Shown one piece after another: positions 18,631 to 63,701 of a stretch of 64,000 nt of DNA. The stretch is from Octopus bimaculoides. Its lineage: Eukaryota. Within the stretch, counting starts at the first letter, position 1, and each line of letters opens with the position of its first letter. The translations under genes were made by a program, and so were the position numbers. The notes under the pieces are model-generated. The model was not told where the DNA came from. It saw nothing but the letters and a program-made list of their open reading frames with translations, and ran no database searches. The stretch covers positions 89,716,714-89,780,713 of the forward strand of contig NC_068987.1 in assembly GCF_001194135.2 (NCBI RefSeq). The letters run 5' to 3'.

Positions 18631-19800
18631 CGATATTAATCTTGGGCATGTACTTACTAGTGCCAGGAATCTTGTCCGTCTGTTTGCTAGAGGCCTCAGC
18701 CACCTGGTAGCTAGCGACAGTCACTTGACAGTGGCTGTCATCTTGGTTGAGAATGAAAGTGAGACTATATTTTTAGAGATGAAAATCTGCACAGAGGGAA
18801 CTTGTTAGGGAAGGTATAAATCTCAAAGCCCTTTCTGACTTGAATGGCTTGTCAAGATGTATCTTTTTGTTTTTGGCAGAGAGCCAAGATCTCGCATGTG
18901 GGGCGCTGCAAACAGCTTAAGGGCCTTCTGTCCACAGACAAAAGGGAGACAATATAACTGCCTGTTGCCAGTATATAAACACAACAGAACATTAACAATA
19001 GAAGAATGTTGTCACAGAACTAGCAGCAGCAATAACAGCAAAAACTATCTAGAAAAATAATTTTTTGTGAATTTAAATTTAGCAAAAAGCGAAATGAAAC
19101 GAAACAAAAAAAAAAAAAAAAAAAAAANNNNNNNNNNNNNNNNNNNNNNNNNNNNNNNNNNNNNNNNNNNNNNNNNNNNNNNNNNNNNNNNNNNNNNNNN
19201 NNNNNNNNNNNNNNNNNNNNNNNNNNNNNNNNNNNNNNNNNNNNNNNNNNNNNNNNNNNNNNNNNNNNNNNNNNNNNNNNNNNNNNNNNNNNNNNNNNNN
19301 NNNNNNNNNNNNNNNNNNNNNNNNNNNNNNNNNNNNNNNNNNNNNNNNNNNNNNNNNNNNNNNNNNNNNNNNNNNNNNNNNNNNNNNNNNNNNNNNNNNN
19401 NNNNNNNNNNNNNNNNNNNNNNNNNNNNNNNNNNNNNNNNNNNNNNNNNNNNNNNNNNNNNNNNNNNNNNNNNNNNNNNNNNNNNNNNNNNNNNNNNNNN
19501 NNNNNNNNNNNNNNNNNNNNNNNNNNNNNNNNNNNNNNNNNNNNNNNNNNNNNNNNNNNNNNNNNNNNNNNNNNNNNNNNNNNNNNNNNNNNNNNNNNNN
19601 NNNNNNNNNNNNNNNNNNNNNNNNNNNNNNNNNNNNNNNNNNNNNNNNNNNNNNNNNNNNNNNNNNNNNNNNNNNNNNNNNNNNNNNNNNNNNNNNNNNN
19701 NNNNNNNNNNNNNNNNNNNNNNNNNNNNNNNNNNNNNNNNNNNNNNNNNNNNNNNNNNNNNNNNNNNNNNNNNNNNNNNNNNNNNNNNNNNNNNNNNNNN

Positions 19801-22616: not shown

Positions 22617-22805
22617 TCAACTTACAGGAGAAATTTCTGGTTGGATGGAAATGTGTTGTATTCCTGCTTTCTTCATTAATTGTTTGATTTGATGAAAAGA
22701 GTTGAGGAAATGAGAAGACGTGACAACATAATGCAACGTGATAACAACTGTATTGTCTGTTAGCTGCCATAAATGAAGTTCATGGACATTGAGAACACCA
22801 GGAAC
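22617..22805 (-). CDS. SLC30-like transporter, exon 5 (cytoplasmic domain); ends at TGA 22617 or splices at 22626
   Basis: tttttcatctcag| acceptor. Encodes VPGVLNVHELHLWQLTDNTVVITLHY...AGIQHISIQPEISP(VS*), with the HELHxWQL and HxxIQPE motifs. Five exons total 1005 nt = 334 aa + stop. Confidence 0.92.
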   Translation of the reverse strand, partial: VPGVLNVHELHLWQLTDNTVVITLHYVVTSSHFLNSFHQIKQLMKKAGIQHISIQPEISPVS

Positions 22806-22914: not shown

Positions 22915-23144
22915 AGGCGGTGAGCTGGCAGAATTATTAGCACACTGGGCGAAATGCTTAGCGGTATTTCGCCCGTCGCTACGTTCTGAGTTCCAATTCT
23001 GCTGAGGTCGACTTTGCCTTTCATCCTTTCGGGGTCGATGGAATAAGTACCAGNNNNNNNNNNNNNNNNNNNNNNNNNNNNNNNNNNNNNNNNNNNNNNN
23101 NNNNNNNCCCAATTTCAGGCCTTGTGCCTTTAGTAGAAAGGATT
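22915..23144 (+). mobile_element. tRNA-derived SINE family A (AGGCGGCGAGCTGGCAGAA head; TTTCATCCTTTCGGGGTCGATAAA core)
   Basis: Most abundant repeat in the window. Other copies near 23325, 24725, 26115, 27820, 35311, 36670, 40590, 44291, 44975, 45215, 45488, 46440, 51820, 62100, 63110 and 63565. Confidence 0.9.
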
Positions 23145-25059
23145 ATACTTTATACCTAGTTAAGGAGGTTGATAAGATTCAAATATGCTTTCAATATTTG
23201 TTGAAAGGAATATCGTAGTTGATAGCATAAAAAATGAGCGGGCGTTTTAGACTCACCCTAATTTCATCAGCGCATATTCAGGAAAAAGTGGTTTTGATAC
23301 ATTAAAGCATGGGATATTTATGTTCTGAGTTCTGAGTTCAAATTCCGCCGAAGTCGATTTTGTATTTCATTCTTTCGGGGTCGATAAAATAAGAACCAAT
23401 TAAACACTGGAATGAATGTAATCGACTTGTCCTCTTCTCCCGAAATTGCTGGCCTTGTACCCACATTTGAAACCAATATTTACAGAAACTTTACTTATAG
23501 GACTCAGGGGGTTGGCTATTTTTGAAACTATTTTGTTAAAAACTGTGTCGTATATGCCATCAAATGCTATAGAATTATAGTGCTAATTATGCGCGTTAAT
23601 GTCTTTTACTGGCCGCATTCTTGCTGCTAATAAACCATTTTGATGGCCATTGGCTCAGATATGTTAACATTAACTCAATTTTTAGATAATTTTATATTCT
23701 TTACTTTTGTTTTGTGATTCTGATCACAGCGGGTGGAGTGTTGTTTGTCGTAAGATTGTGTCAGCTGAAGTGGTACAGTGGTGCAGTGAAGGCTGCAGTG
23801 GCGCCGTGTTGTATTGCTTGCAGCGATGTCGAATTAGTTGAAATATCATAGTGTTGGTTGTAGTGGCACAGATAGAGAAGGTAGGATAACAATGTCTGCA
23901 GTATGGTAACGGTGAGACTTTGGTTGGGAAGGAGTTTCTGCATCAGTGTAGCTGTGGTTGTTTGTGTAGTGGTGTGATGGGTAACGTGGCTGGTTGTGTG
24001 TTGGCTGTAGTGATGGTGTGTTAATGTTGGTTACTACAGAGTTGGTGTCTTTGGAGACCGGGTATAAACCATGGTATTAATGATTGTCATATCAGTTCCT
24101 CCTCCTCCTCCTCCTCCTCCTCCTCCTCCCCCTCAGCAGCATTTAACGACCGTTTTCCATGCTGGCAAGGGTTGGACGGTTTGACAAGCTGGTAAAGCCA
24201 GGAGCCGTATCAGGTTTTTCCACTGCCGCAGGGTTTTAGAAGCGAGAAGAACGAGGGGCAAAAAAGAGGAAATATGACAATTCACTGGATGCAACCACAA
24301 GAAACACCGGCCTTTCAAGATGTCAAGTTGTCCTCATGGAGGAGGCATGAGTAGATACTTGAGAGTGGACTCTGCAACAAGGACCCAAGTGTCCAGTGGT
24401 GATGATGGTGGGGAAGGATTAAACTGGGTATCTGACTGGAAATGGAAACGAGGCTAATTAGTCACTTCACAGGAACTTAACGTTTTACATCTCGCACCTG
24501 GGAGGTCGTCGTATTACTTTAAAAAAAGGGTTCTTATATCGAAGGAGAGGACTTGAATGGAGATAGGAAGAAAAATAAGTGAGGTGGAGGATATCATGCC
24601 TTACCAAGAGTATTATCAATGATCCAAAAGAATGATGTTTTTTTTAAAAAAAAACCTGTTAAACCCTGTAATATTGTTGTTGGGAATATTCTAAAATTGT
24701 TTCAAATTTTGACACAAATTCAGCAGTTTTGAAGAGAGGGGCCTCATCGATCGCCGTACTTGACTGGTACTTATCATTTTATCGACCCCGAAGGGATGAA
24801 AGGAAAAGTCAGATCGGGCGGCATTTGAACTCAGAACGCTAAAACGGACGAAATACCGCCAAGCATTTTGTACGGCATGCTAACGATTCTGCCAGCTCAT
24901 CACTTTGGAATGTTCTGATATCGAAACGTCATTAACTCTTGTTACTCTATAATTCATCTTAGTCGGATTATGTAATACATTTTATGACCAATTACATAAT
25001 CCATTAAAAAAAAATAATCATCATAACTAACGGTTATTATGAAATAGCTGTTGTCTTAC

Positions 25060-25142
25060 TATTTTCTTAATTTGTTCCATGAAGTCTTCAGCTCGAATAT
25101 CATTTGGAAGAGTTTGCAGCATGATGTGTGATGTTCTGTAAA
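25060..25142 (-). CDS. SLC30-like transporter, exon 4
   Basis: tcttttgcag| acceptor, ATA|GTAAGA donor. Encodes (L)YRTSHIMLQTLPNDIRAEDFMEQIKKI, matching the ZnT ILLQTVP motif. Confidence 0.9.
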
Positions 25143-28428: not shown

Positions 28429-29401
28429 TGTAGTGAAATTACCTATCGCCATTAGATACAAAACTACTATCGCCATTACATACAAACTATCTTCTCATTT
28501 ATATATAAACAAGCGCGGGCGTAGTGGAAAACATTTTTCCCTGTCATCACGTGACTGATTATTATTTGAAGCGGCAACTGCTTAGTACCGTTCCCGCCAG
28601 AACGCAACCTGACCAATCACGACACCTAATAAGGTCACGTGATAGAGTATTTTACTGATACCTTTGGGAGCCTACTATCAACTATGAATAGACCAAATTA
28701 TACCCGGCAAATTCGTCTCGGTTCAGATCTCTTAGAGACCTGTTCCGTGTACCACACAGATCAGCAGCAGCAGTTCCAGCGACTACTTCAACAGCTTCGT
28801 CCAGCTACGACTACCACCGACGTCGCCATCAGCAACACGAGTCTACGACTACTAACCAGCATCATCGCCACCAGCATCGCCAACATAGTCAACACGACTT
28901 TAACTACGAACTACAAGATTCGCCACCGTTGATTTCTACGTACACCAACTAACCAAACTACCGCGGCACATCTCTCTCTCTTCGATNNNNNNNNNNCAAG
29001 AGTTCAGCCTGCGACGAACATCTGTATAACAAGAACCCGGCCCGGCATGGAAGCCACAACATCACAACTAGTGATCGCTCTGCCACACACGCCTCAACTT
29101 CTTTCATATACAGACTCTTCCTATTGTGTACTCTAAGAACTGGTATAAATGCTCACGTGTTACTGACTCTTTCTATCTGCTGTATATAACGCATACACAT
29201 ACATGTATCACTTACACACACTCTTTTCTTTATACGACGGCCTGTCTTTTATTAGGTTTTCATTATGTCGCATTCACACTCACACACAAACATACATTTT
29301 AATGTCACAATAAATATTCCTGTTATCCATCTCAATCGGTTGTCATCTATCGTCTTCATTACTGGTCATTTACGAAATCACTATGTTATCGTAGTATAAC
29401 A
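28429..29401 (+). mobile_element. Possible solo LTR
   Basis: Starts TGTAGTG, ends GTATAACA, has a late AATAAA and a CA-rich low-complexity interior. No matching TSD was found. Confidence 0.3.
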
Positions 29402-30283: not shown

Positions 30284-30481
30284 GTAATGGTAAATTGGTG
30301 ATAATGATCAAAGAAATAATACAGATTGTAATCAAAGGATCAGCGTAGTGGCACCAGTGACCTTCTCCGAAAATACTGAGAAGTCCGCTCAAGATTAGTC
30401 CAAGAGATGCTAAATTATTCCCGATCACGTGAACACAAAGCAGATATAAATCAACATGACCTTTTTTTGTTTGAACCTGGT
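30284..30481 (-). CDS. SLC30-like transporter, exon 3 (TM5-TM6)
   Basis: ttttgaattccag| acceptor, C|GTAAGT donor, phase 1 to 1. Encodes (Y)QVQTKKGHVDLYLLCVHVIGNNLASLGLILSGLL...WCHYADPLITICIISLIIITNLPL. Confidence 0.9.
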
Positions 30482-31703
30482 CTGGAATTCAAAAGAGAAA
30501 ACATAAGAGAGAAGAAACAAAACAAACTCAAAAAAAACAAAACAACAAGGAAATCAACCATCCGTCCATTTCCACTGCTCACTATTCCTGATATAACCAA
30601 CCGTCTTCTTCTTTACTCTGCCCTTAGGTCTCCTACTGGTTGGTTCGGCTTGAAGAATCTTTTTTGTGATCCTTTTCTGCGTGTTTTAATTACATGTCCA
30701 TTGTATCGGATCAGATGTTTATTGAACCCAATCCTCCAGTTCAGTCCTGATAGAACAGAACTACAATTAAACGCAATCAAGCCGTGACCACCCACTCGTT
30801 TTTCTAAACATAGTGTATCTTGATTTAATATGTCCTTCCCATTTAATGACGGTATGATTTGAAAACAGATTGGCTGCTATTACAAGCAGATCGAACGACA
30901 ACAAAGAGGCCCGGACGTTGGCTTGTCGTAGCTGTTTGTCTTAGTGGTTTGGTAACGAGGAACAATTATGACCATATCTTCGTTAGCCATCCGCGACTGA
31001 TTAGGGGTCGCTGGTTATGACCCCATCAACTCCCGCTGCACAAACACCAATAGTACATTGCACCTGTTTATGGCAACAAAACAACTCACCACTGACAAAA
31101 TACAAACCACCTACTAGGTCGTCAATAAGATCAATGATAATGTAGCGGTAATTCTAAACTGAACCGCAAGGTAGCCGGTCAAACACCATGATCAAACCAC
31201 AATAGTTTCACGTGATCGGTCTGTTAAGTAATCAGTCAGCTTCAAGCCATCGCATGATTCAATCCTATAGAATTTTCTTCTCGTGCCCTATAAAGATGTG
31301 TTTTTTGGCGATAATTGCAGAATGTTGAGGCAGTTGCACATTCTCATCGCCACCTCCACTCGTTTAAGACAGATGACAGGTAGCAGACAGGAATTGTGTC
31401 ACCACGAATATAGCGCAATTATTTTCCAGTTGTAAAGGGTCAACAACAAATTGCTATATCAGTAAGCTTATCGTAAACTCCAAATAATATGTCTCTCCCA
31501 GTATGTAATTGCTGTTGTTATTTGTAAAAGACCAACACAGTTAAAACTCTACGTGCAGTAGTGAAATCTGTTTATTGTTAGTGGGTGTTGTTCAGTTATT
31601 TCTTCACGCAGCCCAAGAAATACATTTTCATTCAGCAACCCGGTCAGTTATCATCTCAGACCAGCCGGCAACAACAAATCACACCGACACAACTCACGAC
31701 AAT

Positions 31704-31749
<46 letters not shown>

Positions 31750-31793
31750 GTATCTGTTCTTGTAGGATTAATGCATTGTTAACGTTTACTTAC

Positions 31794-32154
31794 ATGCGAT
31801 AAGTTTTTCTTCCGACAGCTTTACCGCTTGAGAATGTTTGCTAGTACAAGACAGACTGTTATAGCCACAATCCTTGTCATCTTCATAACATTTCAGTTTC
31901 TTGTTCTTTCGTCTCTGCCGGTTCAAAGCCACAGCAAGTATAATCAAACAAAGGAGGTTGACACTAAGTCCAACACAACCCATGATAACAATTATAGATG
32001 GTTGTTTCAGCTCCACTGTTGTGATTAGACGCTTCGCTGTGTGACTGATGATGGATATTGACAGAGCTAAAATGAACGTGGAATTAGCAAAGCCACCAAG
32101 AACGTAGCAACGTCCATAACCGTAGGTGTTTTTTTCCTTTCTATTTCGAGCTAT
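31794..32154 (-). CDS. SLC30-like transporter, exon 2 (TM3-TM4 and loop)
   Basis: ttttcatattcaatag| acceptor, T|GTAAGT donor. Encodes IARNRKEKNTYGYGRCYVLGGFANSTFILALSISII...QPSIIVIMGCVGLSVNLLCLIIL..., matching ZnT1 KNTFGWxRAEVxGA. Confidence 0.9.
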
Positions 32155-33459
32155 CTATTGAATATGAAAATACAAAAAAAGATATCAAGTTATAACATAT
32201 ACAGTATTTGGTGGCATATAAGACACTTTCCAAAAATATGTCTCAAACAATAAGTCGGTCTCCCTGGGTCCTGTATGTAAAGTTGGGTCTCCAATAAGCA
32301 TTAATGCACTTCACACTTTTTCCTGGACATGTGCTACTGGAATTGCAGTATGTCTAATATTCCTGTGTCTTTTAAGGCCATTACATACGGTACATTCCTT
32401 CACAATGTCTTTAACTCGATTTCTTCGACTTCAGAAATAAAGTGTCTTTTACTCATTAATTGAAGGTTTATAGGCTTGTGGACATTTTATTTTCTCATTT
32501 GAAGGACATTAGAAGCAAGGAGTTGAGATATATTAAAACCAAAAGAAAAAAATAAAAGTTTGTGTCGTAGGAAGTTTTCTTATATTGAGAGATAAAGTCC
32601 TTAGGTACAGCCAGTGGGACTATTTCGGTATTGGTTCAGTATTATACTCGAATATAAATTATCGACTGTCGACACGACACTCTTTACAAGAGAAATTATA
32701 TTAGTAATATTGAAATAATAGATAACTTAATTTGTACTAAATTTACTGTTTCATTCATATGAAGATATTCAGCAAGTAACCAGATTTCAAAATCAATTCT
32801 AAGAGCTATATTTTCCAATAAACTAATATAAGGTTGAGAGAAAGAAAGAGTTAACTAGCTTTGTTTGCATCGGAGAATGTCTTCTGCAATGTGCTGGCTG
32901 AGTAACGTCGTATGGAGAATTTATCTAGTCGAAGAGAAAGATAAATATCTGTTTTTCTGCAGGAATTAACAGAACAATAGCCCCAAAATCTTGTAGTAGA
33001 TTAGAAATCGAATCGCTGGATAGCTGTGCAGATACTACGGTAAAATCACTGTCGTTTCACGTGATCGGCGGATTAAGTGACCAATTGACGTCAAGCTATC
33101 ACGTGATTCGACTTTCTAGAACTTTCTAACGGGCTTATAAACGGGTGTATTTTTTGTGGCAACTCCAGAATGTTGAGACAGCCGCTTTAACGTCCCCATT
33201 CTGATTGTCTTTCACCATTAACATCAAATCCACAGGCGATACCACCACGACAAACTCTTAGCGACTGCCTTAGCAGTAAACTCAAATCCGGCCCTGGATT
33301 TCATCTGAGTTTACTGCTGAAGAGTTTCCTAGAAATTAAACTTCCAGTAGAAGGACAAAGGGGTCCCGACAATTGGATTACTCTTTACTCTGGTCCGTAA
33401 CCAGTTGGTAGGGGATTAAATTCAGGTATGTTAGCTAATGAATCACTTGTAAATTTTAC

Positions 33460-34160
33460 AGTGATACAACAAAGACTATGCTGATAGAGCTGGACACTCA
33501 GAGCTTAGCATTCGGTCTTAAAATGAACCGCATGGACTACAAAATATATGCCGTCGCCCCAGGCAAGCTGAACTTCGGCGTGTACAAGCTGACGGTATCG
33601 GAAATTTCCTTGTCTTTGTTACTCCCTCTTTGGCACTCCCTGGTACATGGCGCCCTGGCGGCTGCCCGAGTTGCCCGTGCTTGTACCTAGGGTATACTAT
33701 AAATATGCGCTGGAGATATGGATACTGAAATCTCAAAGAGAATAAGGGCGTGATGGAAAGCATTTAACTCAATAATGGATGAGCTCAGAACAACGCTTGA
33801 CAATGCCATACGTGTCAGGCTCTTCAACAGCACCGCCCTACCTGCGTTCTTATATGCAAATGAGATGTAGGCTGCTATGAAGAGGATAGAACATCGATTG
33901 GCTTCGAGGGAAAGGGCTATGGAAAGATCCATGCAAGGAATATCATTATAAGAGCATATTCAAAATGGAATAATTCGGGAAGGGGGTTGGGTGAACGATG
34001 TGATCGCAGAATACCGAAAGAACCAGTTCCGCTGGACCAGATATTTTGCAAGGTCCACAGACAACAGATGGACCCAAGAGACCGGAAAATGCCACATTGA
34101 AGGCCTCCATAACGATGGGAAAACGATTTAGTTAAGAAATTTGGGTCAAGATGGAAAGGA
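33460..34160 (+). mobile_element. RTE/BovB-type LINE ORF2 remnant interrupted by a GC-rich insert at ~33545-33682
   Basis: QSLAFGLKMNR, [insert], YLG...DTEISKRIRA*WKAF...RLFNSTALPAFLYANEM*...ERAMERSM...RWTRYFARSTDNRWT, with several in-frame stops. Confidence 0.8.
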
Positions 34161-35310
34161 ATGGCATTGGTTTGGAAGCGCATTGTGACATATGAATGTT
34201 CGATACTGTGACAACAACGGTTAGTTGTGTATACGTTCTAGCGTCTATTGACAGCCCAGACAGACAACTATACATCCTTGTTTGTCATGTAATATTGTGT
34301 CAGTTTTAAGGCGGCGAGCTGGCAGAAACGTTAGCACNNNNNNNNNNNNNNNNNNNNNNNNNNNNNNNNNNNNNNNNNNNNNNNNNNNNNNNNNNNNNNN
34401 NNNNNNNNNNNNNNNNNNNNNNNNNNNNNNNNNNNNNNNNNNNNNNNNNNNNNNNNNNNNNNNNNNNNNNNNNNNNNNNNNNNNNNNNNNNNNNNNNNNN
34501 NNNNNNNNNNNNNNNNNNNNNNNNNNNNNNNNNNNNNNNNNNNNNNNNNNNNNNNNNNNNNNNNNNNNNNNNNNNNNNNNNNNNNNNNNNNNNNNNNNNN
34601 NNNNNNNNNNNNNNNNNNNNNNNNNNNNNNNNNNNNNNNNNNNNNNNNNNNNNNNNNNNNNNNNNNNNNNNNNNNNNNNNNNNNNNNNNNNNNNNNNNNN
34701 NNNNNNNNNNNNNNNNNNNNNNNNNNNNNNNNNNNNNNNNNNNNNNNNNNNNNNNNNNNNNNNNNNNNNNNNNNNNNNNNNNNNNNNNNNNNNNNNNNNN
34801 NNNNNNNNNNNNNNNNNNNNNNNNNNNNNNNNNNNNNNNNNNNNNNNNNNNNNNNNNNNNNNNNNNNNNNNNNNNNNNNNNNNNNNNNNNNNNNNNNNNN
34901 NNNNNNNNNNNNNNNNNNNNNNNNNNNNNNNNNNNNNNNNNNNNNNNNNNNNNNNNNNNNNNNNNNNNNNNNNNNNNNNNNNNNNNNNNNNNNNNNNNNN
35001 NNNNNNNNNNNNNNNNNNNNNNNNNNNNNNNNNNNNNNNNNNNNNNNNNNNNNNNNNNNNNNNNNNNNNNNNNNNNNNNNNNNCACACACACACACACAA
35101 TGGGCTTCTTTCAGTTTCCATCTACCAAATCCACTCACAAGGATTTGGTCGGCCCGAGGCTATAGTTAGAAGACATTTGCCGAAGGTGACACGCTGTGGG
35201 ACTGAATCCGGAACCAAGTGGAACCACACACCCACACCTGTGCCTCAGATTTGTTTAGTTCTGTAAGTTATAACCTTGCAGGTAAATTTATTATTGATCC
35301 GTACATACAT

Positions 35311-35524
35311 TCTTTTCTACTCTAGGCACAAGGCTCGAAATTTTTGGGGAGGGGGCAGTCGATTAGATCGACCCCAGTACGCAACTGGTACTTAATTTAT
35401 CGACCCCGAATGGATGAAAGGCAAAGTCGACCTCGGTAGAATTTGAACTCAGAACGTAAAGACAGACGAAATACAGCCAAGCATTTCGCCCGGCGTGCCA
35501 ACGTTTCTGCCAGCTCGCCGCCTT
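35311..35524 (-). mobile_element. Full-length SINE family A copy just downstream of ZnT exon 1
   Basis: Reverse complement of the 44291-44506 copy. Confidence 0.9.
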
Positions 35525-35591
35525 GACCCGTACATATATTGAATAAATAATGGGGACGACAGCAGAATATGAAGAATGCCAAATTACTTAC

Positions 35592-35765
35592 TTTCATGAC
35601 AACGATGCTAACCAGCAACGAGGCTCCATCAGCAAGAACCCGGTAGGAATCGATTTCCAAAGCTAAAGAATTTGTCAAAACGCTGAAGTATTTCTCCACA
35701 ATAAAATAAATGAAATGAAGGATTGATATGAAAATAATCGAGTATTGGTCACGTTTAAATGACAT
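35592..35765 (-). CDS. CDF/SLC30 (ZnT1/ZnT10-like) transporter, exon 1 (TM1-TM2)
   Basis: ATG at 35765, AAA|GTAAGT donor. Encodes MSFKRDQYSIIFISILHFIYFIVEKYFSVLTNSLALEIDSYRVLADGASLLVSIVVMK, matching the ZnT1-type S-L-A-x-x-x-D-S-x-H-x-x-x-D pattern with H replaced by R. Confidence 0.88.
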
Positions 35766-44506: not shown

Positions 44507-45669
44507 ATCCTGGAAGAAAATTGGAGGAGAACGCTATGTGCCGAGAAGGTATCAATCAATAGATTTAAACTTCACGAAACAGGATTTTCCATGTCGATCA
44601 TCTGGTTTTACAGAACGAGGTCCATCAACCTGCAAGAAATAGCAGCCGAATCTTTCTCAGATTTCATTTTATCGTCTTAAAAAAATGAGGGACGCATTTG
44701 ATAATTCTAGATATGCAAAGCCAAAGAGAAAGATAGGATTGGTATGGCTGGAACGCCTTGTTCATGATTGTGTCTCGTCCTTTTATCGACCTCCACAGAT
44801 TTCCACCAAAGTCTTTGTTGATTGCTCTGTTGATCTATCAACTCGGTCACATTCGGATCTGAAGACTTTGGTAAATCTGGATAAAAACAAGAAATGTGAT
44901 CGTGAAGAATCTTTTCTTTGACGTTTCCATCGAATAAAATTATCATTTAGAAGACATAATAATAATAGTTTCAAATTTTGGCCCAAGGCCAACAATTTTG
45001 AAGGGAGGGGCTTAGTCGATTACATCAATTCCAATGCTCTACTGGTATTTATTTTATCGATTTCGAAAGGACGAAAGGCAAAGTCAACTTCGGCAGTATT
45101 TGGATTCAGAACGTAAAAAGCCGGAAGAAATTCGTTTAGCATTTTGTTCGTCATGGTAACGAATCTGTCTCCTCGCCGCGTCCTATCTACTAAAGACCTG
45201 AAAAATAGATGGTGGGTAGAGGGGACTTAACCAATTACATCGATTCCAGTGATTGCTTAGTATTTATTTTCTTGACTCTGAAAGGATGAACGGTAAAGTC
45301 AATTTCGGCAGTATTTGAACACAGAATGTAAAAACGGACGAAATGTCGCTAAGCATTTTACCCTGCTAAGCTTTTACATAGTACATATATACATACATAA
45401 ATATATACACACAGACACAATATAATATAATATCTTAAAACATTTGTAAAATATGTCAGACATTGTATGTCTGAAGAACACAGAATTCTTTTCTACTTTT
45501 CTACTCTAGGCACAAGGCCCGAAATGTTTGGGGAGGGGAGCCAGTCGATTAGATCGATCCAGTACGCAACTGGTACTTAATTTATCGAATAAAAGGATGA
45601 AGGAAAAGTCGACCTCAGCGGAACTTGAACTAAGAACGTAAAGACAGGCGAAATATCGCTAATCGTTTC

Positions 45670-48188
45670 GACCGACGTGCTAACCCGTATGCCAGTCCGC
45701 CGCCTTAATAATATAATATCTTAAAACATCTGTAAAATATGCCAGATATTGTATGTCTGAAGAACACAGAATTGTATCATATGCGTAATTCATTTGGGTT
45801 AAGTCTACTAATCGGCTTTTGTTATCGTGACCGTCACTGGTTTCCTTAGATTTGAATGCTTCACTTTATCATTATCAGAAAGCTGCTTTATCTATATCTT
45901 GCATTAAAGCAAAGTACACCCATATGTTGTGAAGCCACTTTGTAGCACAATACGCCCTGTGTTTCACATTAAACTAAGTACATCGGAAAGAAAAGTAAGG
46001 AAGCGGTTGAAACGGAAGTAGGATTCTCTCTGAAGTTATGAGTTCGAATTCTATCAGTGTCGATATTTGCCTTTTATTAAAAAAGTCTATCTTACAAGTA
46101 GTTGATTGAATAGACTCTTGCCCAGGACTGGATATAAACCTTGTGGAACCTATGGCTCAATAGGTTTTGGTTCCAAAGATTTCGCGTCGGTAATTTTCAA
46201 CGGTTTTGTAAACGAGATTGTGCATTACAAAAACAAATATAACTTTGAAAATAATTTAAATACAAAAAAACATTTATAAAATATTTATAATTTCATATCA
46301 GTTTTGCATTTTCTAAATTTTTTATTTTTGCATATTCCATAATTTTAATGACTGCCATCGCTTTGCTAGTTTGTGACGATGTTGTCTTGTTTGGAAAATG
46401 TATTGCAGTTGGTTACCCTCTTATTATATCAGAAGAAAAAAGGCGGCGAGTTGGAAGAAACGTTAGCACGCCGGGCGAAATGCTTAGCAGTGTTTCCTAT
46501 TTCTTTATTGCCCCCAAGGGTCTAAACATAGAGGGGACAAACAAAGGGATTAAGTCGATTACATCAACCCCAGTGCGTAACTGGTACTTAATTTATCGAC
46601 CCCCAAAGGATGAAAGGCAAAGTCGACCTCGGCGGAATTTGAACTCAGAACGTAACGGCAGACGAAATACCGCTATGCATTTCGCCCGGTGTGCTAACGT
46701 TTCNNNNNNNNNNNNNNNNNNNNNNNNNNNNNNNNNNNNNNNNNNNNNNNNNNNNNNNNNNNNNNNNNNNNNNNNNNNNNNNNNNNNNNNNNNNNNNNNN
46801 NNNNNNNNNNNNNNNNNNNNNNNNNNNNNNNNNNNNNNNNNNNNNNNNNNNNNNNNNNNNNNNNNNNNNNNNNNNNNNNNNNNNNNNNNNNNNNNNNNNN
46901 NNNNNNNNNNNNNNNNNNNNNNNNNNNNNNNNNNNNNNNNNNNNNNNNNNNNNNNNNNNNNNNNNNNNNNNNNNNNNNNNNNNNNNNNNNNNNNNNNNNN
47001 NNNNNNNNNNNNNNNNNNNNNNNNNNNNNNNNNNNNNNNNNNNNNNNNNNNNNNNNNNNNNNNNNNNNNNNNNNNNNNNNNNNNNNNNNNNNNNNNNNNN
47101 NNNNNNNNNNNNNNNNNNNNNNNNNNNNNNNNNNNNNNNNNNNNNNNNNNNNNNNNNNNNNNNNNNNNNNNNNNNNNNNNNNNNNNNNNNNNNNNNNNNN
47201 NNNNNNNNNNNNNNNNNNNNNNNNNNNNNNNNNNNNNNNNNNNNNNNNNNNNNNNNNNNNNNNNNNNNNNNNNNNNNNNNNNNNNNNNNNNNNNNNNNNN
47301 NNNNNNNNNNNNNNNNNNNNNNNNNNNNNNNNNNNNNNNNNNNNNNNNNNNNNNNNNNNNNNNNNNNNNNNNNNNNNNNNNNNNNNNNNNNNNNNNNNNN
47401 NNNNNNNNNNNNNNNNNNNNNNNNNNNNNNNNNNNNNNNNNNNNNNNNNNNNNNNNNNNNNNNNNNNNNNNNNNNNNNNNNNNNNNNNNNNNNNNNNNNN
47501 NNNNNNNNNNNNNNNNNNNNNNNNNNNNNNNNNNNNNNNNNNNNNNNNNNNNNNNNNNNNNNNNNNNNNNNNNNNNNNNNNNNNNNNNNNNNNNNNNNNN
47601 NNNNNNNNNNNNNNNNNNNNNNNNNNNNNNNNNNNGACCGACGTGCTAACCCGTATGCCAGTCCGCCGCCTTAATAATATAATATCTTAAAACATCTGTA
47701 AAATATGCCAGATATTGTATGTCTGAAGAACACAGAATTGTATCATATGTGCTATTCATTTGGGTTAAGTCTACTAATCGGCTTTTGTTATCGTGACCGT
47801 CACTGGTTTCCTTAGATTTGAATGCTTCACTTTATCATTATCAGAAAGCTACTTTATCTATATCTTGCATTAAAGCAAAGTACACCCATATGTTGTGAAG
47901 CCACTTTGTAGCACAATACGCCCTGTGTTTCACATTAAACTAAGTACATCGGAAAGAAAAGTAAGGAAGCGGTTGAAACGGAAGTAGGATTTTCTTTGAA
48001 GTTATGAGTTCGAATTCTATCAGTGTCGATTTTTGCCTTTTATTAAAATAGTCTACCTTACAAGTAGTTGATTGAATAGACTCTTGCCCAGGACTGAATA
48101 TAAACCTTGTGGAACCCATGGCTCAATAGGTTTTGGCTCCAACGATTTTGCGTCGGTGATTTTCAACTGTTTTGTAAACAACGAGATT
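45670..48188 (+). repeat. ~550-bp direct duplication (45670-46219 and 47636-48188) across a 932-N gap
   Basis: The copies align base for base with scattered substitutions and diverge after AACGAGATT. Confidence 0.9.
46704..47635. other. Assembly gap (largest of many N runs)
   Basis: Other large gaps at 15570-16068, 19128-19800, 34338-35083, ~43898-44158, ~56515-57025 and 58159-58969. Confidence 0.99.
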
Positions 48189-51810: not shown

Positions 51811-53207
51811 AACAGATAATTTTTGGAGAGTGGGGTCAGTCGATTAGATCGATCCTAGTACGCAACTGGTTATCGACCCCGAAAGGATGAAAGGCAAAGT
51901 CGACCTCGGCGGAATTTGAACTCAGGACGTAAAGACAGACGAAATACCGCTAAGCATTTCGCCCGGCGTGCTAACGTTTCTTATTTCTTTATTGCCCACA
52001 GAGGGCAATAGAGGGGACAAACAAGGACAGATAAAGGGATTAAGTCGATTACATCGACCCCAGTGCGTAACTGGTGCTTAATTTATCGACCCTGAAAGGA
52101 TGAAAGCAGCTCGCTGCCTTCTCACAACAAATAATTAACAGCACCAATGTCGATTGTAAGTTTGCTGGTTTTGTCGTATTTTTCTTCTTGTCAATGAAAT
52201 GCGAAAGAGAAATGTGAAGTTGTGTCTTACCGTTTTGCCTTTCTCAGTGGTAACGATTCTCCTTTGTTTGTTGATGTTTGATTTGTTCGTTCTTTTAGAA
52301 AAAAAAATGTAAAACTGTATTTTTCAAAGATTACAAACTGAATTAGTTGATGGTCTGTTGTAAAGGCACGTATGCAATCGTTGGCGTACATAGACACATA
52401 TAACACTCACAATCTATTTCACACATACTCAAACATACCCACACAACCCACACACACTCACTCTCACAATCACAGGGACTATTTCACACACACACAAAGC
52501 ATTTTCACATAACTACGCAAACCCACACACACACTCCTCTCTCTCTCCCTCCCCCTTTCTCTCTTTCTGTCATATACTCTCTATTTTTAATCTTACTTCT
52601 CTCCTTCCTCTCACTGCCCCTACTTTATCCAATATCAGTCAGACTGATTAAAATGAAAAAAGAAAACAAAAAAAAAAATACAGAAAAGAAAAGAAAGAGA
52701 GAGTTAAATTTCAGTTGAATCTACTGAATAAAACTCACTACATTTACAGACAACAATTGTGATAACACAGAAGAGAATATTGTTTCGTTCACTCGTTTTA
52801 CTTATTTATTTCGTTTGTTTATTCATTTATATATTTAATATATTTATTTAATCTATTTATTTATTCACATGTCATTTATATATTTATTTACTTATCGAGG
52901 TTGTGTGTCCTTGTGGAAAAGTAAAATACTTAAAGCTACAATTTCTACTTTACGCTTTTATAATTTACATATATCTGCTATATATTTGTGAAAAGGGCAG
53001 ATGTTGTCTCAGAAGCAGTTGTACAGGTAAAAGTGTTAGGAAATGTGGTCAGATTGACCTGAAAATTTGCACACCTATGTTAAAAGTGCTGGGGAGTTTG
53101 CATGGCAAGTTTGAGTTTGCTCAGTTGAAAGGCGTGGCCTCTAGGGCAAAATTCCTCATCTTTAAAATGTGACCCGAGTAGACCCGAATGAAATCGAGTC
53201 CTAATAC

Positions 53208-60924: not shown

Positions 60925-61786
60925 CGTGGTCTGATCAATAAATATTCGGACTGTTACCATAGTAACGAAGCTAAAGCATGCACAAATTGACCTTGAACTC
61001 TGCTGTGCATGCGCACTAAGTTTTAATGTTCTAGCACACTTCCGCTGTTACAGCAGTGCTTGGAAGGAAGGTGTGTAGCTTGTGAACGTCACATTGACCA
61101 TGATAGAGAAAGTCGAGCAAAGAATCTGCATCAAGTATTGCTAAAAACTTGGTGCTACCTGCCCAGAGGCCTCCGCAAAGTTTTCAAAAAGTTTTCATCG
61201 TTCTCGATACAATCAACTGAAACCCGAATGTCTTTTTGGTCAGCTGAAAGCAGTTTTGGCACAAGCTTGGCGGACATGCAACTCATATCTAAATCCTCAG
61301 TGATAATGGACTGAACTGATCCGTAACTAATCTGCACATCCTCTGATAACTCACGGATAGTGATTCGACAATTTCCCCTCACAGCTGCATGCACATCTGC
61401 AATGGTTTTCTCAGTTCTGTTGGTTGCGGATCTCCCAGAACGTTCGTTAATATCGACATTTTTTCGGCCAACTTGGAAACGTCTGAACCGCTCATACACT
61501 TGTATGCCGCTCATACACTCCTCTCCGTACACTTTCTGCAACCTTGCGTAACCCTTTGAGCAAGTATCGCCATGACGACTTTCTCTGTCATGATCAATGC
61601 GGCGATCACACGCTATACACATTCCTTCCAAGGACTGTTGTAAACAGCAGAAGTGAGCTAGAACATTAAAACTTAGTGGGCATGCACAGCTGAGTTCAAG
61701 GTCAATCTTTGCCAAGCGGCTTTACTCTGTGTTTCTTTAGCTTTGTTACAAATGTAAGAGTCCGGATACTTATTGATCAGACCTCG
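60925..61786. mobile_element. Rearranged mariner made of two inward-facing 5' ends
   Basis: 28-bp TIRs with TA TSDs at 60923-60924 and 61787-61788. Transposase starts on + at 61100 (MIEKVEQRICIKYC*KLG) and on - at 61591 (HTH through ENFLKT). Confidence 0.88.
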
Positions 61787-63701
61787 TATGCAGACTCGCA
61801 CATATGCATACACATATATACACACGCCAACCGGTCTTCGAAATAACTTAGCACTTTCGAGATATTTCTCTTATTCAGAATATGCTTACTGGCCTTTTGT
61901 AACATTCATCTTTTTTCTGTGTACATTGAAACATGAGATTTACATCTTAAATGCTTAAAGACAGAGGAGTTTATTAGAAAAGATGTGGGATCTTTTTTAA
62001 ATTCATTCCAATCACCAGAATTTTCTCAAATTATTTAAACGTTTATAGGTTCGTATGATGATGACGGAAATCACATTCATTTTCTCTAGAAATAAGTAAC
62101 CCTTTCTATTATCGACGTAAGGCCTAAAGTCATGGGGGAGGGGTTTAGTCGATTATATCGACCCGAGTGCTTGACTTCTATTTCTTTAATCGACTCCGTG
62201 AGGATGAAAAGCAAAGTCGACCTCGGCGAAATTTGAACTCAGAGCGTAAAAACGGACGAAATGCCGCTAAGCATTTTCTTCGGGTGCTAACAGTTCTGCT
62301 AGCTCACTACCCTTTCTCTAGAAATTTATGAGGGAAAAGTTACAAGTCTATGAGATTATGTAATTTTAGCCAATCGAAACATCCGTTGTCAACATAGCGG
62401 AAGTCGCAACTGTTTGTTTCCATGGAAACATTCTTAAAGTTATGAGACTAAAAATTATATAACTTTAGAGGCTTGTAATTTTTTTATTATTAATTTCTAG
62501 AGAAAATGGATGTATTTTTCGTCATCAGCGTGCAAAACTACATCAGTGTTAAACATTTGAAAACTTCCGGTGACTGGAAAGAAATTTTTAAAAATCCGTG
62601 ATGAGATTGAACCTCAGGACAAATGATTGCATGGAAACTTCTCGGTTAGCTTTTGTGAGAAAAGTGTACATATTATGTGAAGATAATAATAACAGGCCAC
62701 GTGAAATAGTAAATCACTGACTTAACATATTTAGCCGTACTGTGTTATCACCTTATGGTGATAACATTAAATGTAAGCTGTTGGCGGCTATCTGAGATTG
62801 TTTCTACACAAAGATAAGATAATAACTGGATGCTAACAGACAAACCGATGATAAACTACAAATGGCAAATTAGTTAATGAGTCAACAAAAAGTACTAACA
62901 GCTAAATGACTAAATACAGTGTTTCGAGGGTCAAAATGTTTGAGTCTAAAACATTGAACCAGCTCATTACATTTTGTTTTACTTTTGTTTTTTATTTACA
63001 CTTTTTTTTCCGGGGGCTCTTAAGGTTGGTTACCCGGTTTTCATGGTGTATAAGTGACTAAGATTACATCATTCCTTCCCTGAATGGGACACTGGTCCAT
63101 TGCAGAGTTCAAGGCCAACAGTTTTTGAGGGGAAAGTGCAAGTCCACTACATCGACCCCAGTACTTGATTGATACCTTATTTTATCAGCCCCGAAGGAAT
63201 GAAAGGCAGAGTTGACCTCGGCGGGATTTGAACTTAGAACGTAAAGATTCGGAAGAAATCCGAGACTGAAAATTTCTTGATTGCAACACAGGATCAAAGC
63301 CTCCATGAGAAACCACTAAAAACATGCAATGAAATATAATAAATAAAACAACTTCAGAATATACGAAGGGACAAATAAGTCCTTAAGACCGATCCCACGT
63401 AAAACCATGAGATTTTTTCCGAAGTTACATTGTGTTATATACTGGATACAACTCTGAACCGTAGAGGGAAGCGACTAGACTGCTTATACAGAGCAGATAA
63501 CCCAGTTGCTATATATATACGACGGCAGTAGAGAAAATTTGAGAATTTATTCTAGAGATGCTAAACAGCATTTTGTCCGTCTTTACGTTCTGAGTTCAAA
63601 TTCCACCGAGGTTGACTTTGCCTTTCATCCTTTCGCACTGGGTCGATGAAATCGACTATCCCCTCCCACAGATTTCAGGCCTTGTGCCTATAGCAAAAAG
63701 G

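Follow-up and report, generated by a model that had tools for sequence, protein, structure and literature searches.

An SLC30 protein of Octopus bimaculoides with arginine and asparagine in metal site A

The stretch of DNA analyzed here (the window) comprises 64,000 nucleotides from Octopus bimaculoides (contig NC_068987.1, positions 89,716,714 to 89,780,713 of the forward strand in assembly GCF_001194135.2) and carries on its minus strand the gene LOC106872797, which encodes a member of the SLC30/CDF superfamily from the ZnT1/ZnT10 (SLC30A1/A10) branch. In the intramembrane metal-binding site of this protein, site A, which is contributed by the second and fifth transmembrane helices (TM2 and TM5), the H-D/H-D quartet of ZnT1 and the N-D/H-D quartet of ZnT10 are both absent and R-D/H-N is found instead. 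The reading that we tentatively favor, with a little less than even confidence, is that the protein is a neofunctionalized, non-canonical protomer, which would act as a metal-binding regulatory, sensing, or auxiliary subunit driven by its cytoplasmic domain and not as a Zn2+/H+(Ca2+) exchanger.

The gene was assembled from homology and splice signals, the minus strand between 35900 and 30200 being read first. It has five readable exons between 35765 and 22626, all on the minus strand, with GT-AG borders and a single open frame of 334 amino acids. Exon 1 (35592-35765) contains the start ATG, TM1, and TM2, including D39-S-Y-R42-V-L-A-D46, and ends at a GTAAGT donor. Exon 2 (31794-32154) encodes TM3, TM4 with N124, and a His-poor, basic, and Cys-containing TM4-TM5 loop; shortly after its donor, intron 2 has about 50 uninterrupted T residues on the minus strand (31706-31755). 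Exon 3 (30284-30481) encodes TM5 (H196-V-I-G-N200-N-L-A-S204), a clade-specific WCHYADP motif, and TM6, and exon 4 (25060-25142) the end of TM6 and the start of the cytoplasmic domain (…LYRTSHIMLQTLPNDIRAEDFMEQIKKI). Exon 5 (22626-22805) encodes the cytoplasmic alpha-beta-beta-alpha-beta domain with H280-E-L-H283, H297, and H323…E329, and has a GTAAGT donor at its end. In the minus-strand translation TM2 reads LEIDSYRVLAD and TM5 reads CVHVIGNNLAS, and the cytoplasmic motifs HELHLWQL and HISIQPE are present.

The 334-residue model is a 100% match to XP_014775396.1 of O. bimaculoides, and the Pfam domains PF01545 Cation_efflux (3e-27, 96.1 bits against a gathering cut-off of 26.6) and PF16916 ZT_dimer (4e-07, 30.4 bits against 26.7) are both recognized in it. 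The current database names of the gene and its orthologues are generic (uncharacterized protein, zinc/cadmium resistance protein-like, and COT1-like). An initial reading of the sequence, the first-pass annotation, had described the gene as a ZnT1-like member of SLC30, and this family assignment is borne out by the Pfam domains, by alignments to PDB chains, and by structural matches. The span that it gave, 30284-35765, covers exons 1-3 alone; the gene runs to 22626 and further. Its statement that all splice sites are intact holds for the five readable exons only, the donor of exon 5 having no readable partner exon.

In the HMMER alignment to the PDB chains, R42 corresponds to His43 of human ZnT1 and Asn43 of human ZnT10, D46 to D47, H196 to H251 and H244, and N200 to D255 and D248, respectively. 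Together with the minus-strand reading this confirms the R-D/H-N site proposed initially. The codon for Arg42 is CGG (35640-35642, minus strand) and that for Asn200 is AAT (30417-30419, minus strand). DSYRVL.D and HVIGN are found in the orthologues of Octopus sinensis (94% identity), Octopus vulgaris, and Argonauta hians (69%), DSYRILTD and HVIGS in two transcript clusters with 44% identity, and DSYRVLTD and HVLGN in the bivalve Solemya velum (34% identity). Every member of the clade therefore has R-D/H-N or R-D/H-S, the latter in the decapodiforms, including mRNAs of Sepia esculenta. The Arg codon varies synonymously, being CGG in O. bimaculoides, CGC in Argonauta, and CGA in both O. sinensis and Sepia; at the TM5 position three octopods have AAT, and Sepia has AGC (Ser). 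The concern that Arg and Asn might be assembly errors, or absent from orthologues, is refuted by their occurrence in other species, whose genomes were assembled independently, and in mRNA assemblies.

Transcription and splicing are evident for the decapodiform orthologue: that of Sepia esculenta is found as intronless contigs of 1.8-2.0 kb with the full open reading frame (ORF) in 84 SRA runs, several of whose accessions belong to the S. esculenta larval RNA-seq project PRJNA844162. Expression, which had been named initially as a point to be confirmed, is documented in part, by full-length mRNA contigs from Sepia RNA-seq runs; no octopus transcripts were seen.

A profile built from five orthologues and searched against 1.84e9 protein representatives gave 13,750 homologues. 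Among the best 150 of these, Arg at the TM2 position occurs in this clade only (the R-clade), and the site quartets include 142 HD-HD and 11 ND-HD. A second profile search, of a collection of 5.8e9 clusters, added no further R-clade members, and the profile searches of the two protein collections found none beyond cephalopods and Solemya. In a neighbor-joining tree built from 324 columns with 200 bootstraps, Solemya and the other R-clade members form a monophyletic group with 100% bootstrap support; its branch is long and falls outside the clade of canonical ZnT1-like proteins, next to the ZnT1-like and ZnT10 clades, with lamprey ZnT10 as a weakly supported sister (46%). Octopods have, in addition, a canonical HD-HD ZnT1-like paralogue with a His-rich loop (XP_029638846.1 in O. 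sinensis, CAI9725217.1 in O. vulgaris, and GAB1599911.1 in Argonauta); the O. vulgaris and Argonauta proteins fall in the canonical ZnT1-like clade of the tree, apart from the R-clade. On these sequence comparisons the R-clade is an ancient mollusc paralogue lineage, older than the split of cephalopods and bivalves, which is known so far from cephalopods and the protobranch bivalve Solemya only and has elsewhere been either lost or not sampled.

Some further observations concern the paralogues and the limits of the clade. The canonical and R-clade genes appear to lie on one chromosome-scale record in O. sinensis (CM016865.1) and in O. vulgaris (a 128.5-Mb chromosome), where, by accession numbering, they are not adjacent. 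A 768-residue protein of the orthonectid Intoshia linei (P0022) was rejected as a clade member despite its high score, as it consists of two complete ZnT1-like units in tandem with canonical HD-HD sites in both, and represents either a "dimer" joined covalently or a fusion of gene models. A link to copper and haemocyanin, which cephalopods and protobranchs possess, was considered and rejected, since no gastropod or chiton is among the clade members found; gastropods and chitons, too, have haemocyanin. Searches of the literature for an Arg-containing CDF site or for mollusc ZnT proteins yielded nothing relevant, and no paper describing the R-D/H-N(S) site or the R-clade was found. The R-D/H-N(S) site is a new variant inside the known SLC30 family and not a new kind of system.

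Estimates of dN/dS by the Nei-Gojobori method are 0.24 for O. bimaculoides against O. sinensis and 0.17-0.18 against Argonauta, with values of 0.18-0.29 in the membrane domain as against 0.08-0.11 in the cytoplasmic one. A ratio near 1, in a gene without expression, had been named initially as an outcome that would refute the proposal, and the measured range of 0.17-0.24 lies well away from it. Octopus and Argonauta are 65% identical in the R-clade paralogue versus 90% in the canonical paralogue, about 3.5 times faster evolution. The R-clade paralogue is fast-evolving yet selectively maintained, and neutral decay and assembly error are excluded.

Within the R-clade 75 positions are invariant, and 45 of these match the canonical consensus. 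Those that are both invariant and canonical include the pathway residues E24, D39, D46, N124, H196, S204, and D226 and, in the cytoplasmic domain, H280, E281, H283, H297, and E329; the fixed changes specific to the clade are Y41, R42, T230, M252, H323, and the extracellular WCHYADP motif. Columns conserved in canonical proteins are kept at 27 of 75 positions (36%) in the membrane domain and at 15 of 26 in the cytoplasmic domain. The His-rich cytosolic loop has been lost from the R-clade gene: as judged by eye, the TM4-TM5 loop contains 2 His residues and lacks any HxH run, whereas the canonical octopus paralogue has GHTHSHGSSHG. In human ZnT1 the ligands of SCD3, a zinc site of the cytoplasmic domain, are E371 and H373 together with C446 and C447 of the tail (PMC11549101). 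Their counterparts, from alignments compared by eye, appear to be E281 and H283, which are readable in the window, and the CC pair that is invariant in the exon 6 tails of the orthologues. The decapodiform proteins P0003 (Sepia) and P0004 (a second species, with transcripts from runs SRR27666085 and SRR27666071) and the Solemya protein P0005 have long His-rich C-terminal tails (e.g. HHHIHHRYHHHHH), which octopod orthologues are without; their sequences suggest a lineage-specific addition to C-terminal metal binding.

The AlphaFold2 model available for the O. sinensis orthologue (P0001), whose identity is 94%, has six helices followed by an H-E-E-H-E arrangement, the CDF fold, with a pLDDT of 71. 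In Foldseek searches with this model, the top matches are human ZnT1 and SLC30A10, and the probability is 1.00 for ZnT1, ZnT10, ZnT7, ZnT8, and YiiP; it should be noted that the TM-scores to the inward-facing states and to the outward-facing ones are similar, so that the model is uninformative as to conformational state. The ranking of PDB chains by sequence is led by SLC30A10 (3.7e-33) and SLC30A1 (8.8e-32), as compared with 2e-18 for ZnT7 and 3e-16 for ZnT8.

Published mutational studies bear directly on what the R-D/H-N site might do. The D47N/D255N and D47A/D255A mutants of human ZnT1 are transport-dead (PMC11051671), and release of zinc from this protein requires protonation of both aspartates (PMC11549101). 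The Mn2+ ligands of SLC30A10 are D40, N127, D248, and S252, with E25 and M44 in supporting roles, and the D248N mutation abolishes Mn transport (PMC12480533). The equivalents of these residues here are D39, N124, N200 (Ser in decapodiforms), S204, and, for E25, E24, so that the D248 equivalent alone is lost. Because D47N/D255N in ZnT1 and D248N in SLC30A10 are inactive, canonical exchange of Zn2+ or Mn2+ through site A would be quite improbable in the octopus protein. Initially the protein had been proposed to be a pseudo-transporter, a regulatory subunit or sensor, or a carrier of another substrate; the published mutants side with the view that ordinary transport through site A is unlikely.

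For the favored non-canonical protomer the following mechanism may be envisaged. Arg42 would be separated by a single helical turn from D39 (3 residues away) and from D46 (4 residues away), on the same face of TM2, and would place a fixed positive charge at the position of the metal-coordinating His43, and the loss of the TM5 aspartate would remove one of two negative charges. With this Asp lost and an Arg gained, the four side chains would go from a total formal charge of -2 to one of about 0, and a charge-neutral site A would be expected no longer to hold Zn2+ or Mn2+ tetrahedrally. Arg42 may instead serve as a tethered cation, filling the site or locking it, its guanidinium group being located where the metal or proton would bind. 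Function would then rest with the tail and with the cytoplasmic domain that has been retained, dimeric and metal-binding, and the partner could be a second copy of the same protein, in a homodimer, or the canonical HD-HD ZnT1-like paralogue of octopods. Such a domain-driven role is supported by the larger share of canonical columns that the cytoplasmic domain keeps relative to the membrane domain. Two considerations weigh against it. Among the invariant pathway residues listed above are the equivalents of three of the four residues that bind Mn in SLC30A10, a degree of conservation that seems to exceed the needs of a mere scaffold subunit and to fit a working ion site. Moreover, ZnT6, a known auxiliary protomer, has hydrophobic substitutions and no Arg.

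The same conservation is a main argument for a different and quite possible reading, in which the protein is an active transporter with a changed ion or stoichiometry, the charge of the site having gone from -2 to about 0 or -1. Arg would be a built-in counter-charge, and a pathway made of E24, D39, N124, S204, and D226 would carry a monovalent cation or a proton; alternatively, a divalent metal might bind at an upper, SLC30A10-like site with altered coupling. Replacement of Asp by Asn together with an Arg or Lys in cation sites alters stoichiometry in other carriers, for example between CPA1 and CPA2 antiporters, in the H,K-ATPase (K791), and in Na+-independent LeuT-fold carriers. The cavity-lining polar residues are invariant across the cephalopod-bivalve divergence, and omega (dN/dS) for the membrane domain, given above, also speaks for this reading. 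The Mn site of SLC30A10, which is formed by D40, N127, D248, and S252 rather than by HDHD, has three of its four residues kept here (PMC12480533), and MceT, a member of the CDF family, is reported in PMC6440370 as a Na+(Li+,K+)/H+ antiporter. A transporter of this kind is difficult to reconcile with the observation that D248N by itself kills transport by SLC30A10, with the loss of the metal-recruiting His-rich loop, and with the retention of merely 36% of the canonical-conserved columns of the membrane domain. It is also without an Arg precedent in a survey of A sites in 18 CDF clades, whose quartets are HD-HD, ND-DD, DD-DD, DD-HD, EN-HD, and HH-DH and in which arginine is never mentioned (PMC5703985).

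A canonical or near-canonical metal transporter is improbable, whether it arises because the site tolerates Arg and Asn or because A-to-I (adenosine-to-inosine) editing conditionally recodes Asn200 from AAT to GAT (Asp). Cephalopods recode extensively through A-to-I editing, and single A-to-G changes turn AAT into GAT (N to D) or AGT (N to S), Ser being the residue in Sepia (AGC). However, an Arg codon (CGN) is not editable to His, the presence of the same Arg and Asn in the bivalve Solemya is left unexplained by editing, and eight Sepia mRNA contigs have no A/G variation at the key codons. Tolerance of the substitution is favored by the activity that is retained in the H43D and H43N mutants of human ZnT1, but in H43A about 70% of the activity is lost (PMC11549101), and a permanent positive charge would be expected to disrupt the site more. 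Last, an assembly artefact or decaying pseudogene, which might be suspected from the many gaps in the window (three within introns of the gene), the truncated annotated protein, and evolution about 3.5 times faster than that of the canonical paralogue, is very improbable and already largely refuted by the intact ORF and canonical splice sites, the complete six-exon gene or full-length mRNA in three other species, omega of about 0.2, the 75 clade-invariant positions, and a truncation that is accounted for by the location of exon 6 in a gap.

The gaps and the missing exon require further comment. In all orthologues a sixth exon follows that encodes a Cys-rich tail (VGEYDEN..CLLNKVCDNQDCSTMVCC.. 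or VGEYDEN..ECLLNKVCDNQDCSTMVCC..), whereas read-through past the GTAAGT donor of exon 5 (after 22626) gives an artefactual end, PVS* (22617-22626), which is also how the RefSeq protein XP_014775396.1 terminates. Sensitive tblastn searches of the window with three orthologous tails found no exon 6. In a colinear blastn comparison with the O. sinensis locus, exon 6, which encodes a Cys-rich C-terminal tail of about 50 amino acids in that species, falls in an assembly gap of 673 N at 19128-19800, and this gap begins in a (TG)n microsatellite matching one that lies about 40 bp upstream of O. sinensis exon 6. The annotated O. bimaculoides protein is, by comparison with its orthologues, C-terminally truncated because exon 6 sits in this gap; the continuation of the gene to 22626 and beyond and the hidden exon for the Cys tail had been overlooked in the first-pass annotation. 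The O. vulgaris model CAI9726333.1 (P0317) has a spurious DDRGCRYQQL tandem-repeat tail in place of the true end. A second gap, of 746 N at 34338-35083, is harmless to the reading frame, since it is confined to intron 1. Exons 1 and 2 join (…VVMK|IARNR…) without interruption when compared with the proteins of O. sinensis and Argonauta, the loci of those two relatives have no exon within intron 1, and no exon is lost there. Two smaller gaps, at 28987-28996 and 23054-23107, are both intronic.

With respect to the rest of the window, a repeat of about 170-290 bp that resembles a short interspersed nuclear element (SINE) occurs in many copies, both within the window and at the O. sinensis locus; copies in the window lie at 35305-35524, 45497-45779, 51818-51977, 62141-62310, 46497-46703, and 24746-24898. 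As judged by eye, the intron 1 gap is flanked on one side by (TG)n and on the other by sequence resembling the reverse complement of the SINE-like stretch located at about 35520-35480, and inverted SINE-like copies apparently flank this gap. At least four gaps start in (TG)n/(CA)n microsatellites, which are probably the cause of the assembly breaks. An ORF of 186 amino acids on the minus strand (61155-61715) has weak, sub-threshold Pfam matches to HTH_48 (the helix-turn-helix of Mos1 transposase) and HTH_24 and is probably a degraded remnant of a mariner-like transposase. For neighboring genes, tblastx of the window with the flanks of the Argonauta gene matched repeats only; downstream of the R-clade gene, Argonauta has a neighbor of the CPAP/CENPJ-like type (Tcp10_C) that is encoded on the opposite strand, of which no trace was found in the window.

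In all CDF/ZnT transporters, site A is considered the single feature whose function is conserved, and its known natural variants exchange His, Asp, Asn, or Glu (PMC5703985). The R-clade may be the first CDF lineage with an invariant cationic side chain, Arg, in the intramembrane site, one kept for longer than the divergence of cephalopods and bivalves. That a divalent-metal/proton exchanger has thereby become a carrier with another charge stoichiometry or substrate (e.g. a monovalent cation or proton), much as Lys or Arg serves as a tethered cation in other families of transporters, or else a metal-gated device, is conceivable although doubtful; in the metal-gated alternative, sensing would take place through the cytoplasmic sites and a putative extracellular Cys-His-x-x-Asp site in the WCHYADP motif. 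Purifying selection on the Arg, with the polar pathway otherwise retained along with the metal sites of the cytoplasmic domain, constitutes a natural experiment. It bears on the way in which substrate and coupling depend on the charge of the site, and on the conversion of transporters into sensors or auxiliary subunits. For annotation, the point to be made is that the RefSeq protein of O. bimaculoides is short owing to a last exon in an assembly gap.

Among the functionally characterized members of the family, human ZnT10 (SLC30A10; 9KVX-9KVZ), a manganese exporter, is the best PDB match by sequence (E 3.7e-33). It shares with the octopus protein a first site A residue other than His (Asn43) and the equivalents of D40, N127, S252, and E25. 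The essential D248 is kept in ZnT10 but is Asn or Ser in the R-clade, and Asn43 of ZnT10 is neutral whereas Arg42 is charged. Human ZnT1 (SLC30A1; 8XM6, 8XMA, 8XMF, 8ZSZ, and 8J2G), a proton/calcium-coupled zinc exporter, has the same fold (Foldseek E 4e-16; target-normalized TM-score 0.73-0.75; sequence E 9e-32; about 24-32% identity). Equivalents of its E25, D40, D47, N, H251, S, and D317 are present, as are HELH, IQPE, and a Cys-rich C-terminal tail ending in CC, the last seen in orthologues of the octopus gene. The R-clade proteins differ from ZnT1 in the replacement of H43 by Arg and of D255 by Asn or Ser, in the loss of E99 in cephalopods, and in having neither a His-rich TM4-TM5 loop nor a long Cys-rich extracellular TM5-TM6 domain. 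The canonical mollusc ZnT1-like proteins (XP_029638846.1 and GAB1599911.1) are present in the same genomes and have the same domain architecture, but they have an HD-HD site and a His-rich loop, evolve slowly, and are 32% identical to the R-clade paralogue.

ZnT6 (SLC30A6), a non-transporting partner of ZnT5, is likewise an SLC30 protein whose site A is disabled, yet the protein is conserved and functional as an auxiliary protomer, its site ligands being replaced by hydrophobic residues (PMC7949119). The analogy with ZnT6 drawn in the first-pass annotation is imperfect. Both are SLC30 proteins with an altered site A, but ZnT6 belongs to a different SLC30 branch and two of its ligands have become hydrophobic, whereas the R-clade has charged or polar residues at the changed positions and an otherwise invariant polar pathway.

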